From: Anolis carolinensis
Taxonomy: Eukaryota
Length of the DNA stretch: 64,000 bases
Direction of reading: 5' to 3'
Assembly: GCF_035594765.1 (NCBI RefSeq)
Contig: NW_026943823.1
Location: 62,001-126,000 of the forward strand
Both the position numbers and the translations under genes were made by a program. Every line of letters starts with the position of its first letter. The first letter of the stretch is position 1. Below, piece by piece: positions 40,262-45,999 of the stretch. The notes under the pieces were generated by a model. That model ran no database searches, had not been told where the DNA came from, and saw only the letters and a program-made list of their open reading frames with translations.

Positions 40262-40829
40262 TTGTATGACACAGCAAACAAGATAGATATGCTGGATTTC
40301 GTATCACAAAATCACACGTCGAACACTTCCCAAGTGTCTAGGACTGTGTGATGTATTTTTGGATGATGCGTGCAGATCCCAGCAGGGTGGCCTTTTGCAG
40401 TTGGCAGATCGTAATTTTGTCAATGTCTATTGTTTCCAAATGCCGGCTGAGATCTTTTGGCACAGCACCCAATGTGCCGATCACCACCGGGACCACCTGC
40501 ACTGGTTTCTGCCAGAGTCTTTGAAGTTCAATCTTGAGGTCCTGATAGCAGCTGAGTTTTTAATAATAATAATATCGAGGCTGGGTGGCCATCTGTTGCG
40601 GTTTCTTTGCTTGTGCTTTTCCTGCATGAAGGCAGAAGGAGGTTGGACTGGATGACCCTTAAGGTCTCTTCCATTATTATCATTATCATTATTGAGACTG
40701 GATGGCCCTTGAGGTCTCTTCCAACTATATCATCATCATCCTCACCATCATCATCAATATTACTGGGGCTGAAAGATTATTTGTTGGGGATTGGGGTTCA
40801 GCTCGATGGCCCATAAGGTCTCTTTCAAC

Positions 40830-40894
<65 letters not shown>

Positions 40895-41002
40895 GACACA
40901 GCAAACAAGATAGATATGCTGGATTTCATATCACAAAATCACAAGTCGAACACTTCCCAAGTGTTTAGGACTGTGTGATGTGTTTTCGGATGATGCACGT
41001 AG

Positions 41003-41132: not shown

Positions 41133-41166
<34 letters not shown>

Positions 41167-41254
41167 GACACAACAACGTTGTATGACACAGCAAACAAGA
41201 TAGATATGCTGGATTTCGTTTCACAAAATCACAAGTCGAACACTTCCCAAGTGT

Positions 41255-43435
41255 CTAGGACTGTGTGATGTATTTTTGGATGATGCGTGCAGATCCCAGT
41301 AAGGTGGCCTTTTGCAGTTGGCAGATCGTAATTTTGTCAATGTCTATTGTTTCCAAATGCCGGCTGAGATCTTTTGGCACGGCACCCAGTGTGCCCATCA
41401 CCACCGGGACCACCTGCACTGGTTTCTGCCAGAGTCTTTGAAGTTCAATCTTGAGGTCCTGATAGCGGCTGAGTTTTTCCTGTTGTTTTTCGTCAATGCG
41501 ACTGTCACCTGGGATGGCAACATCAATGATCCAAACCTTGTTCTTTTCCACAACTGTGATGTCTGGTGTGTTGTGTTCCAGAACTTTGTCAGTCTGGATT
41601 CGGAAGTCCCACAGTATCTTTGCGTGTTCATTTTCCACAACCTTTGCAGGTTTGTGATCCCACCAGTTCTTAACTGCAGGGAGGTGATACTTGAGGCATA
41701 GGTTCCAATGAATCATTTGGGCCACATAGTTGTGCCTCTGTTTGTAGTCTGTCTGTGCAATTTTCTTACAGCAGCTGAGGATATGATCAATGGTTTCATC
41801 GGTTTCCTTGCACAGTCTGCACTTTGGGTCATCAGCTGATTTTTCGATCTTGGCCTTGATTGCATTTGTCCTGATGGCTTGCTCCTGGGCTGCACGGATC
41901 AGGCCTTCTGTCTCCTTCTTCAGGGTCCCATTCGTGAGCCACAGCCAGGTCTTCTCTTTATCAGCTTTTCCTTCAATTTTGTCAAGGAACTTTCCATGCA
42001 GTGTTTTGTTGCGCCAGCTGTCAGCTCTAGTTTGTAGTGCAGTTTTCTTGTACTGGTTTTTTGTCTGCTGTGCTTTGAGGAGTTTCTGATTTTTGACTTC
42101 AATCAAAGCAGGTTCTTCACTTTGTTTTACATATTCTGCCAGGGCATTTTCCTCTTCTTTGACTGCTTGCTTTACTTGTAAGAGTCCTCTGCCCCCTGAT
42201 CTTCTAGGCAGATATAGCCGGTCAACATCACTGTGAGGGTGCAGGGAATGATGAATGGTCATGAGTTTTCTTGTTTTTCTGTCCAAATTGTCCAGTTCCG
42301 CCTGTGTCCAATTTATAATGCCAGCAGTATATCTTATGACAGGTATGGCCCAGGTGTTTATGGCCTTGATGGTGTTGCCTCCATTGAGCTTGCTTTTGAG
42401 AATTTTTCTGACCCTTTGTGTGTATTCTTTACTGACCACAGTCTTCACATGTTCATGCTTGATGTTGTCCAGCTGTAATATGCCCAGATATTTATAGGCC
42501 TCTGGCTGGTGACACCTTATTGTTTGGCCATTGGGCATATTGATGCCCTCACTTTCAATTATTTTTCCCTTCTTCAATGCCACTGTCGAACATTTGTCCA
42601 AACCAAACTCCATGTTGATATCAGTGCTAAAAATTCGGACAGTGTTGGTCAGAGATTGGATTTCAGTTTCCGTTTTCCCATATAGCTTCAGGTCATCCAT
42701 GTACATCAAATGTGAAATTTTGTGAGAATTCTTAGATGTTTGGTAGCCGAGATTTGTTTTTTGTAAGATTGTTGACAGAGGGATCATGGCAATAATGAAA
42801 AGCAGAGGGGACAATGAGTCTCCCTGGAAAATTCCTCTCCTGATGTTGACAAGTCCATAACTTTCATTTCCAACAAACAGTTCAGTTTTCCAGTGCTCCA
42901 TCATGTTTTCAATGAAGGTGCCAACGTTTTTACTAATCCCGATGGCGTCCAGGCACTTGATGATCCAGCTGTGTGGGAGTGAGTCAAAGGCCTTCTTGTA
43001 GTCAATCCACGTCATGTGAAGATTAGCTTTTCGGCTCTTACAGTTCTCCAGAATCATTTTGTCAATCAATAACTGGTCTTTTGTGCCCCTGCTTTTCCGT
43101 TTGCTGCCTTTCTGTTCATCTGGCAAGATTTTTTTTTCTTCAAGATAGTCTTGAATTCTGTCAGCTATGATGCCAGTCAGTAGTTTAAACATAGTGGGCA
43201 GACACGTTATTGGCCTGTAGTTTCCTGGTGCTGCTCCTTTTGCTGGATCCTTTTGTATCAGGTATGTTCTTCCAGTTGTTAGCCATTCACTGATACTTCC
43301 TTTCTGCAGCATCTCATTGAATTGTTGGGCCATTTTTCCATGTAAACTAATCAGATGTTTGAGCCAAAATCCATGAAGTTGATCACTACCAGGCGATGTC
43401 CAGTTCTTGACTTTTTGCACTCGTTTGCTGATCAA
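41255..43435 (-). CDS. R4/Dong reverse transcriptase + CCHC + restriction-like endonuclease (N-terminally truncated)
   Basis: 726 uninterrupted codons: NYRPITCL, IDYKKAFDS, GIFQGDSLSP, YMDD, CRLC-x8-H-x4-C, PDITVV...IIDVAIP, KLSRY. Confidence 0.93.
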   Translation of the reverse strand: MISKRVQKVKNWTSPGSDQLHGFWLKHLISLHGKMAQQFNEMLQKGSISEWLTTGRTYLIQKDPAKGAAPGNYRPITCLPTMFKLLTGIIADRIQDYLEEKKILPDEQKGSKRKSRGTKDQLLIDKMILENCKSRKANLHMTWIDYKKAFDSLPHSWIIKCLDAIGISKNVGTFIENMMEHWKTELFVGNESYGLVNIRRGIFQGDSLSPLLFIIAMIPLSTILQKTNLGYQTSKNSHKISHLMYMDDLKLYGKTETEIQSLTNTVRIFSTDINMEFGLDKCSTVALKKGKIIESEGINMPNGQTIRCHQPEAYKYLGILQLDNIKHEHVKTVVSKEYTQRVRKILKSKLNGGNTIKAINTWAIPVIRYTAGIINWTQAELDNLDRKTRKLMTIHHSLHPHSDVDRLYLPRRSGGRGLLQVKQAVKEEENALAEYVKQSEEPALIEVKNQKLLKAQQTKNQYKKTALQTRADSWRNKTLHGKFLDKIEGKADKEKTWLWLTNGTLKKETEGLIRAAQEQAIRTNAIKAKIEKSADDPKCRLCKETDETIDHILSCCKKIAQTDYKQRHNYVAQMIHWNLCLKYHLPAVKNWWDHKPAKVVENEHAKILWDFRIQTDKVLEHNTPDITVVEKNKVWIIDVAIPGDSRIDEKQQEKLSRYQDLKIELQRLWQKPVQVVPVVMGTLGAVPKDLSRHLETIDIDKITICQLQKATLLGSARIIQKYITQS

Positions 43436-43439
43436 GGTG

Positions 43440-43581
43440 CCACCGCAGGTGCCACCTTGACGTGGTGGGGGGGCTTAACTGCTCCAATGATGACTGAGGG
43501 CTGTGCTGGCGGTAGTGTAACTACCGGTAGGTCCAACCAAGCCAGAGAGGCCTCAGCTGAGGAGCAGAACTAAGAGCACCT
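43440..43581 (+). ncRNA. Candidate HDV-like self-cleaving ribozyme (L1Tc type) with K-turn in P4
   Basis: P2 AGGTGC/GCACCT, P3 ACC/GGT, L3 TTGACGT, P1 3' strand G7, P4 CTGCTCC/GGAGCAG, J4/2 CTAA; box C ATGATGA and box D CTGA. Confidence 0.65.
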
Positions 43582-44562
43582 AACCCATTAGCATTATGGA
43601 GAAACAAACCCAAACGAAGTCTATACTGGCTCGGTCGTCGCCCAGGATAAAAAGGACCACGGTGGATGCTGCTGATTCTGGACATCCATTGACAAGTGGG
43701 CTACGGAATCATCAAACCCCAAATGAACAGTCACAGAAGCGGCAGAAATATACAATGCCAGAAAACCACACAATTATTATTATTATTACTATCATTGTTA
43801 TTATTATTATTAATGTTGAGGCTGTATGGCCATCTGTTGGGGGTGCTTTGATTGTGCTTTTCCTGCTGCTGCAGCTGGCTCGTTTCCTCCGTCCAAAAGG
43901 GCCCAACGCTGCTGGGAATGGCCAAGGGCCGGCCGAACCCCAGGACTGCCCTTTGCCCCTTATCAGCAGCAAAGGCAAATGTTGTCAGGATGGGCGGCTG
44001 CCAAGCTGCTCCTTATCGGAAAGGCAAGGCTGTTGGGTGCATATGTATGTATGCATACAAGTATGTACACACATTCACACCCACAAACACGCCCCTCCCT
44101 CCCTCCCTCCCTCCCTCCCTTGCCCTGCCTTTCACCTAATCCCTGTCTCCAGAGAAGCCTGGCCAATGGGCACAAGCCTTCCTTGGCCCATACGACTCCT
44201 AGTTGAGAACGGGGCTGGACTGGATGGCCTTTGGGGCTCCCTCCTAAATGTATGATACTATTATCTATCACATATAGTTGCAAGTGTGAATGCTGCAATT
44301 AATTGCCTTGATTAGCATTGAACAGCCTTGCAGCTTCAAGGCCTGGCTGCTTCCTGCCTGGGGGGACCCTTTGTCGGGAGGTGTTAGCTGGCCCTGATTG
44401 TTTCCTGTCTAAAAATTCTCGTTTTCTGAGTGTTGTTATTTTTTTTTTTTACAGGCGGGAATCAGCCAGGCCTTGAAGTTGCAAGGCCATTCAGTGTTAA
44501 TGAAGCAGGCCAACTGCACCATCCACACTTGCTTCATACAGACAACAATAACAATAGTAGTA

Positions 44563-45630: not shown

Positions 45631-45966
45631 GTACGCGCCTCTCCCCCTCTCGCTCCTCTCGCCCGGGATTCTGTGGCTGGGGTTGCCTTGGATGGCCATC
45701 TGTCGGGAGGGCTCTTGCCTGGCAGGAAGAAAGGGAGTGGGCTGGATTACCTCCGGAGGTCCCTCCCGACTCTGGAATTCGATTGTTGTTATTATTGTGC
45801 CAGGCTTTGTGTGTCCTCTCCCTGGTTTCATAAAGCCTAGGGTTCTATTGTTGTTGTTTTGGATGGCCATCTGTCGGGAGGGCTTTGGTTGTGCTCCTTC
45901 TGCCTGAAGGCAAAAGGAAAGGAGTTGGACTGGGTGGCCCTTGGCATCTCTCCCAACCTAAAAATC

Positions 45967-45999
<33 letters not shown>

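Follow-up and report, generated by a model that had tools for sequence, protein, structure and literature searches.

A candidate HDV-like ribozyme in the 5' leader of a squamate R4/Dong-like retrotransposon

An R4/Dong-like element with an inverted 5' end

The window analysed here is a 64,000-nt stretch of the Anolis carolinensis genome (NCBI RefSeq assembly GCF_035594765.1, contig NW_026943823.1, positions 62,001 to 126,000) that harbors a copy of a non-LTR retrotransposon. A 726-residue open reading frame (ORF) on the minus strand (41255-43435) has as its best protein match a 1137-residue A. carolinensis reverse-transcriptase (RT) protein, P0001, at 97% identity, and the body of the element (41255-43434, minus strand) corresponds by tblastn to ORF residues ~412-1137, which hold the RT and the CCHC / PD-D-K region. 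Pfam identified RVT_1 in this ORF (E=5e-32), together with a weak zf-RVT match. Direct inspection of the C-terminal end of P0001 revealed CRLC...H...C (CCHC), followed by PDITVVEK...IIDVAIP (PD-D-K), which we read as the restriction-like endonuclease signature of R2/R4-type elements. The order of the domains is that of R4/Dong elements, with a single ORF in which RT precedes the CCHC motif and a PD..D..K restriction-like endonuclease.

On the element strand, (TAA)n flanks the copy at both ends. At the 3' end the repeat (target or tail) lies at 41135-41166 on the minus strand, where TRF reported (TTA)10.7 on the plus strand, and it is separated from the stop codon by a 3' UTR (41167-41254, minus strand). 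At the other end, an (ATT)n tract identified by TRF and in the sequence (43773-43812 on the plus strand, (TAA)n on the minus strand) represents the target repeat on the upstream side of the minus-strand element. The related elements L001, L002, L004 and L007 likewise begin immediately after (TAA)n, as expected of a Dong-type target. The window element therefore reads as a Dong-type, (TAA)n-targeting R4-clade non-LTR retrotransposon, assigned from its domains and target. This agrees with a preliminary description of this DNA, which had placed a lizard R4/Dong element in (TAA)n on the strength of the letters alone.

That description had treated the element as lying plainly on the plus strand, a view that does not hold, as the copy consists of an inverted 5' fragment and a minus-strand RT body. 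Its placement of the start of the element ORF at the ATG at 43596 was correct, since the 57 residues read from there on the plus strand are 89% identical to the N-terminus of P0001 (residues 1-57). The first 59 codons of the element ORF (43596-43772, plus strand) end at the (ATT)n flank, into which the plus-strand ORF runs at 43773. The minus-strand body covers residues ~412-1137 only, residues ~60-411 are missing, and contigs of other anole copies carry the RT reading frame on past 43434 (as loose ends). From these observations it follows that the 5' fragment at 43435-43772, comprising the leader and 59 codons, is inverted and fused head-to-head to the minus-strand body. This layout is what twin priming would produce.

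R4 copies with 81-86% protein identity to the anole element were also found in an assembly of the scorpion Centruroides sculpturatus (L006, KZ493998.1, a 1.38-Mb contig; 5162-7443 and 11347-12610), where they are due either to horizontal transfer or to contamination. One of them has an inverted 5' piece, with amino acids 73-300 opposite amino acids 599-1137, showing that such inversions recur in this family.

The 3' end of the window element recurs at 40300-40560 and 40895-41000. These two stretches are among the further 5'-truncated fragments of the same family in the window, the others being at 2314-2620, 12626-13144 and 15227-15811, and some of them lie stacked within the (TAA)n/(ATT)n microsatellite that follows immediately downstream of the main copy. 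No second copy of the 5' leader was found elsewhere in the window. A tandem array at 45864-46665, with a unit of ~135 nt in 5.9 copies (and also a 261-nt period), terminates in (ATT)n and resembles a SINE or a satellite associated with that microsatellite.

Predicted fold of the leader and its variation in anoles

The leader is 156 nt long, and its plus strand can be drawn as a nested double pseudoknot of the HDV type (43440-43581) that ends 14 nt before the ATG at 43596. When the pairs were tabulated by script, every helix of the preliminary drawing was located where it had been drawn. P2 is formed by AGGTGC (43447-43452) and GCACCT (43576-43581; 6/6 pairs), and P3 by ACC (43454-43456) and GGT (43464-43466; 3/3 pairs), which closes a 7-nt L3, TTGACGT (43457-43463). 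The 3' strand of P1 is a run of seven G residues (43467-43473) opposite CCACCGC (43440-43446), with which five of seven pairs can be made. P1.1 is a single pair between G43459 of L3 and C43474, the nucleotide after the P1 3' strand, and is G-C in all four lizard sequences considered below. CTGCTCC (43479-43485) and GGAGCAG (43561-43567; 7/7 pairs) form the base of an extended P4 domain of 89 nt (43479-43567). J4/2, AACTAAGA (43568-43575), holds a candidate catalytic cytosine, C43570, the putative C75 equivalent, within CTAAG and just before the P2 3' strand. The segments follow one another in the order P1-P2-P3-L3-P3'-P1'-P1.1-P4-J4/2-P2' of a double pseudoknot, as they do in the lizard loci L004 and L005. 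Despite this complete order, the 5' strand of P1 is defective in the window copy.

Minimum free energy (MFE) folding of 43440-43581 was moderately better than that of shuffled sequences (z=-2.6) and preferred an alternative hairpin using a duplicated CCACC. The MFE of the P4 domain was -41 kcal/mol (z=-3.64), and none of 200 shuffles folded as well. Inside the P4 base stem, AUGAUGA (43487-43493) on the 5' side and CUGA (43557-43560) on the 3' side constitute a box C/box D k-turn-like internal loop, and an Rfam search of the P4 region returned only sub-threshold C/D snoRNA matches.

For a comparison of the anole family we used Logan contigs of four runs (X2, X4, X9 and X8), counting contigs at each site. 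No variant reached 5% between 43444 and 43477, a stretch that includes the P2 5' strand, P3, L3 with its CpG, the P1 3' strand and P1.1. Within 43440-43581 there were 15 variant positions, 10 of which constitute five predicted P4 pairs, each with a complementary type of change. The counts given below, in the order X2, X4, X9, X8, are counts per site rather than of changes linked within one copy. At the one non-CpG pair, 43499/43551, G>A was found in 44, 80, 44 and 31 contigs and C>T in 39, 64, 39 and 28; both changes belong to an anole subfamily and are about equally frequent. The other four pairs are at CpG positions: 43480/43566 (T>C in 20, 39, 20 and 16; A>G in 33, 65, 39 and 24), 43481/43565 (G>A in 30, 65, 30 and 24; C>T in 41, 69, 42 and 29), 43510/43526 (C>T in 17, 55, 23 and 11; G>A in 36, 58, 24 and 12) and 43511/43525 (G>A in 30, 57, 17 and 16; C>T in 25, 34, 13 and 12). 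Only 43499/43551 represents clean evidence of pairing because CpG pairs would vary at opposite positions of a stem even without selection. The variable positions 43478, 43571 and 43575 fall in predicted linkers, including the N after the candidate catalytic C. Within J4/2, variation occurs only after that C (43571 T>C and 43575 A>T), and C43570 itself has no variant at 5% or more among the anole copies.

The alignment of the other anole copies starts at 43443, and upstream of it seven contigs of run X8 contain a C-run with TAA-like sequence before it. Complementary to the seven G residues and located where P1 needs a 5' strand, this C-run is the P1 5' strand that the window copy is missing, and the GC at 43445-43446 is a linker (J1/2) between it and P2. 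The C-run looks ~12 residues long versus seven in the G-run, so that any register of cleavage is provisional. L003, the locus of protein P0025 and part of the anole leader search, is 5'-truncated.

What occupies the position of the P1 5' strand in the window copy is a junction filler. A repeat search revealed a perfect 10-nt direct repeat at the junction (family D2, 100%), in which AGGTGCCACC at 43435-43444 on the plus strand is repeated at 43447-43456. The upstream unit contains the CCACC that had been read as the P1 5' strand, and because it repeats 43447-43456 perfectly, CCACC probably arose by duplication of the P2 and P3 strands at the junction rather than by mutation of P1. We also considered a snap-back origin of the junction (inverted repeat I1), which fits worse than the perfect direct repeat. 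Consequently, the earlier suggestion that this copy is damaged in P1 stands insofar as its authentic 5' strand, the C-run, is absent, but not in its implication that CCACC is what remains of that strand. Judged from its sequence, 43440-43581 in the window would be a dead inverted fragment, not functional and unlikely to cut well. Inverted copies may nevertheless record where the 5' end of the template RNA lay, and the inverted piece here stops within the zone of the P1 5' strand, which fits cleavage there without proving it.

Leaders of other lizards and known ribozymes

Protein searches with the N-terminal region identified two loci in Phrynocephalus forsythii (L004 and L015) and one in Hemicordylus capensis (L005), in each of which the leader core immediately precedes the start codon homologous to that of Anolis. 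The core persists in three lizard families despite an identity of only 45-59% in the surrounding protein. Since MAFFT misaligned the Phrynocephalus copies across a deletion in P4, helices were tabulated by script from coordinates set by hand, and the comparison covers four individual, decayed copies in three species.

P2 is AGGTGC/GCACCT in Anolis, GGGTGC/GCACCC in Phrynocephalus and (A)GGCAC/GTGCC(C) in Hemicordylus, with changes on both sides at pair 1 (A-T to G-C), pair 4 (T-A to C-G) and pair 5 (G-C to A-T). The strands of P1 are the C-run of other copies and G7 in Anolis, CCCCC (in ACCCCCA) and GGGGG (in TGGGGGT) in Phrynocephalus, and CCACACA and TGTGCGG (6/7 pairs) in Hemicordylus, so that the runs are C5/G5 in Phrynocephalus versus G7 in Anolis. 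In Hemicordylus two C-G pairs of P1 have become A-T, and its single mismatch, A.C, is at a position of CpG decay. The P4 pair 43499/43551, G-C in the window, is A-T in Hemicordylus. Compensatory changes were thus identified at three pairs of P2, at least two of P1 and one of P4, and the covariation check proposed in the preliminary description came out in favor of the fold, on four lizard sequences and by pair inspection rather than a formal statistic. L3 is TTGACGT in Anolis, TTGTCGT and TTGTCAT in Phrynocephalus and TTGGCAT in Hemicordylus, and the CTAAG of J4/2 is present in Anolis and both Phrynocephalus copies and is CAAAG in Hemicordylus. In L004, whose 5' end looks full-length, the P1 5' strand comes first after (TAA)n, ATAACAACAA. 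This is the very position, at the (TAA)n junction, that an HDV-like ribozyme has to occupy if it is to release its element from a co-transcript.

There are weak points in this comparison. P3 has two of three pairs in L004 (with T.T) and three of three in L015 only by counting a G.U, and P1 is only 5-6 bp long in Phrynocephalus. The Hemicordylus P1 5' strand is 27 nt upstream of P2 (~28 counting the unpaired A2986), across a local duplication, and by our own estimate the chance expectation of six Watson-Crick pairs in seven within 45 nt is ~6%. The box C/box D loop is outside the conserved core, as both Phrynocephalus copies lack box C through a deletion and Hemicordylus has an altered version of it.

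Drawing such a fold is by itself not above chance. A relaxed HDV-like descriptor had ~100 matches in the window, and a strict one (6-bp P2, 6-bp P4, 3-bp P3, 7-nt L3, Watson-Crick P1.1, CNRA J4/2 and P1 of at least 5/7) had four, compared with a mean of ~1 per dinucleotide-shuffled window; the descriptor misses L004 and L005 through single mismatches. Rescaling the strict-descriptor shuffles ourselves, we expect ~0.001 chance matches inside a given 150-nt leader. What points beyond chance is the combination of the location in the 156-nt leader, the conservation with covariation in other lizards, the start of P1 right behind (TAA)n in L004 and the match of the core to L1Tc described below. The Infernal comparison with HDV-like models suggested in the preliminary description (Rfam HDV, CPEB3 and drz families) went against it: cmscan returned no HDV-type match, even at E<=10, for the window region, L004 or nine related loci. 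The HDV-family models of Rfam omit pseudoknots and do not expect a P4 of 89 nt.

Ribozymes of this kind are known from the same clade. Both Dong of Bombyx mori and R4 of Ascaris lumbricoides are reported to have an HDV-like ribozyme at the 5' end (Eickbush et al. 2013, PMC3774820; Ruminski et al. 2011, cited therein), and Dong RNA placed behind seven TAA repeats cuts itself in vitro at its boundary with them (PMC3774820). The lizard leader, likened to these two from published descriptions, shares with them the retrotransposon clade, the architecture and, as a prediction, a ribozyme at the very 5' end, where junction cleavage would free the RNA from a co-transcript. The lizard element also has the (TAA)n target of Dong. 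It differs from both in its vertebrate (squamate) host, its 89-nt P4 with a k-turn-like loop and its homopolymer C/G P1. No relevant paper on a ribozyme of anoles, lizards or Rex6, and none on a ribozyme-headed R4/Dong element of a vertebrate, turned up in the paper library searched. The lizard leader would add a vertebrate case to the published R4/Dong ribozymes, and the biology proposed here is not new, nor is a new mechanism implied, because the ribozymes of Ascaris R4 and of Bombyx Dong, the latter with cleavage shown, have already been published.

The L1Tc ribozyme (L1TcRz, or Pr77) of Trypanosoma cruzi is experimentally proven (PMC3185411), and the corresponding 77 nt of L1Tc have promoter activity as well (PMC3383444). 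The R77 oligonucleotide of L1Tc contains GCCACCTCAACGTGGTGCCAGGG and CTAAG (PMC1874656), so the L1Tc hallmark cited in the preliminary description matches the printed sequence. Over P3, L3 and the 3' strand of P1, the anole stretch GCCACCTTGACGTGGTGGGGGGG and L1Tc agree in 18 of 23 positions. Features common to L1Tc and the anole leader are P3 ACC/GGT, a 7-nt L3 that reads U-N-N-ACGU, a P1.1 of one pair, a C-G pair at +1 and CUAAG in J4/2. In contrast, P1.1 is A-U in L1Tc (by eye from the oligonucleotide) and G-C in the lizards, and P4 is short in L1Tc and 89 nt long in the lizard leader. L1Tc, from a protist, belongs to the APE-type elements of the ingi clade, and the 18/23 likeness does not by itself establish common descent of the two.

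HDV and CPEB3 have a G.U wobble at +1, at the cleavage end of P1. In the lizards, both in the C-run of the anole family and in Phrynocephalus, +1 is instead a C paired to G. A G.U at this position is not universal, because the active L1Tc ribozyme also starts with C. The ribozymes of R2 and CPEB3 have the same double-pseudoknot plan as the lizard leader. R2 often cuts inside the upstream 28S sequence. The CPEB3 ribozyme, which is intronic and starts with G.U, has a 7-nt L3, UUCACGU, and a one-pair P1.1 flanked by U.U, a layout like that of the lizard leader. P1.1 is C-G in HDV and CPEB3 and G-C in lizards.

Interpretation of the leader and alternative 5' modules

Taken together, these comparisons suggest, with a probability that we put at about three in four, that the 5' leader of a squamate, (TAA)n-specific R4/Dong-like lineage encodes an HDV-like double-pseudoknot self-cleaving ribozyme. 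The L1Tc-style reading proposed in the preliminary description is thereby strengthened as a prediction by the conservation in lizards, the compensatory changes in P2, P1 and P4, and the location of P1 at (TAA)n in L004. By analogy with Bombyx Dong and R2, the element would be transcribed within a read-through transcript across (TAA)n. The leader would then fold, its first nucleotides (the C-run in Anolis) pairing with the G-run at 43467-43473 to form P1, and P2, P3, the one-pair P1.1 and the long P4 would complete the structure. The C of CUAAG (43570) would act as general acid in a cut immediately 5' of P1, releasing an element RNA with a 5'-OH and a compact 5' fold 14 nt before the start codon. 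Confirmation would provide a vertebrate case of an R4/Dong element with a ribozyme at its head, and would widen the rule by which RLE elements that lack a promoter and insert site-specifically use an HDV-like ribozyme to detach their RNA from host co-transcripts. Anole copies are numerous and of recent origin, at 97% identity to one another, and the family offers many natural variants for structure-function work.

The leader could instead be a conserved, structured 5' UTR that does not cut itself, serving as an internal promoter, as a structure for translation initiation or RT binding, or as a box C/D k-turn module. The box C and box D beside the terminal stem of P4 and the weak, sub-threshold snoRNA matches are in line with this, as is the promoter activity of the 77 nt of L1Tc; moreover, because the related elements L001, L002 and L007 use a tRNA-like leader, the leader slot evidently tolerates different modules. 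We nevertheless regard a non-cutting leader as unlikely. Among the helices that covary are P1 and P2, the two long-range helices of the pseudoknot, and the single-pair P1.1, none of which has a role in a simple hairpin or k-turn module; the C of J4/2 and the L3 motif match active ribozymes; and box C does not persist in Phrynocephalus or Hemicordylus. A promoter or translation role would in any case be compatible with catalysis, as L1Tc has both. A related notion is that the leader has captured, or has embedded in it, a snoRNA-like gene of the box C/D type, namely the 89-nt P4 region, and that the pairings around it are incidental; the terminal stem CTGCTCC/GGAGCAG, with AUGAUGA and CUGA inside, and a weak SNORD88-like match (12 bits, E=6.8) can be cited in its favor. 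Scores of this kind are far below gathering thresholds, and the ribozyme core is kept in the lizards whose box C is deleted or changed, making a snoRNA origin highly improbable.

To a reader impressed by the average of about one match per shuffled window that the strict descriptor makes, by the ~100 relaxed matches, by the 5/7 P1 of the window copy and by the silence of Rfam on HDV-type structures, the drawing might appear to have been forced on a GC-rich leader with no functional RNA structure. Such a chance resemblance has, in our estimation, a very small probability, given the ~0.001 matches expected in a given 150-nt leader, a core kept in three lizard families at 45-59% protein identity, compensatory changes in three helices and the 18/23 identity to the proven L1Tc ribozyme.

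Beyond the self-cleaving ribozyme that we favor, a broader joint scenario may be entertained, which we consider quite improbable as a whole. In it, SNU13-type proteins recruited by the P4 k-turn would protect the 5'-OH end, which has no cap, so that the retrotransposon RNA would in effect be capped by a snoRNP, and the 5' module would be interchangeable across the clade, with tRNA-like leaders cut by RNase P. Sister (TAA)n-targeting R4/Dong elements with 53-57% protein identity to the anole element have a tRNA-like leader directly after (TAA)n and no HDV-like fold (L002 at 1675-1747, L007 at 25-100, L010 at 10-90 and L001 at ~150-215). The leader of L002 scored 31.4 bits against the Rfam tRNA model (cutoff 29), and ARAGORN called no tRNA in the tRNA-like leaders. 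Such a leader might be another kind of 5' module that serves as a substrate of RNase P or as a pol III promoter.

A further stretch, ATACCGG[A/C]TCGGTCG[T/C]C[G/A]CCCGGGT, is at 43621-43646 in the window and occurs ~25 nt after the ATG in L001, L002, L004, L005 and L007 as well. Its DNA is conserved even though the proteins are only ~40% identical there, and besides coding it may act as a signal in the RNA. Scanning metagenomes for it yielded six loci, all of them distant relatives with other leaders; L016, from Logan, has no recognisable leader core. The leaders of two distant metagenome relatives, L009 (~200-260) and L014 (~40-100), contain GGCTAAGGGAGC, which we take to resemble the J4/2-P2 stretch of the antigenomic HDV ribozyme. 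These leaders may represent another type of ribozyme in the clade.
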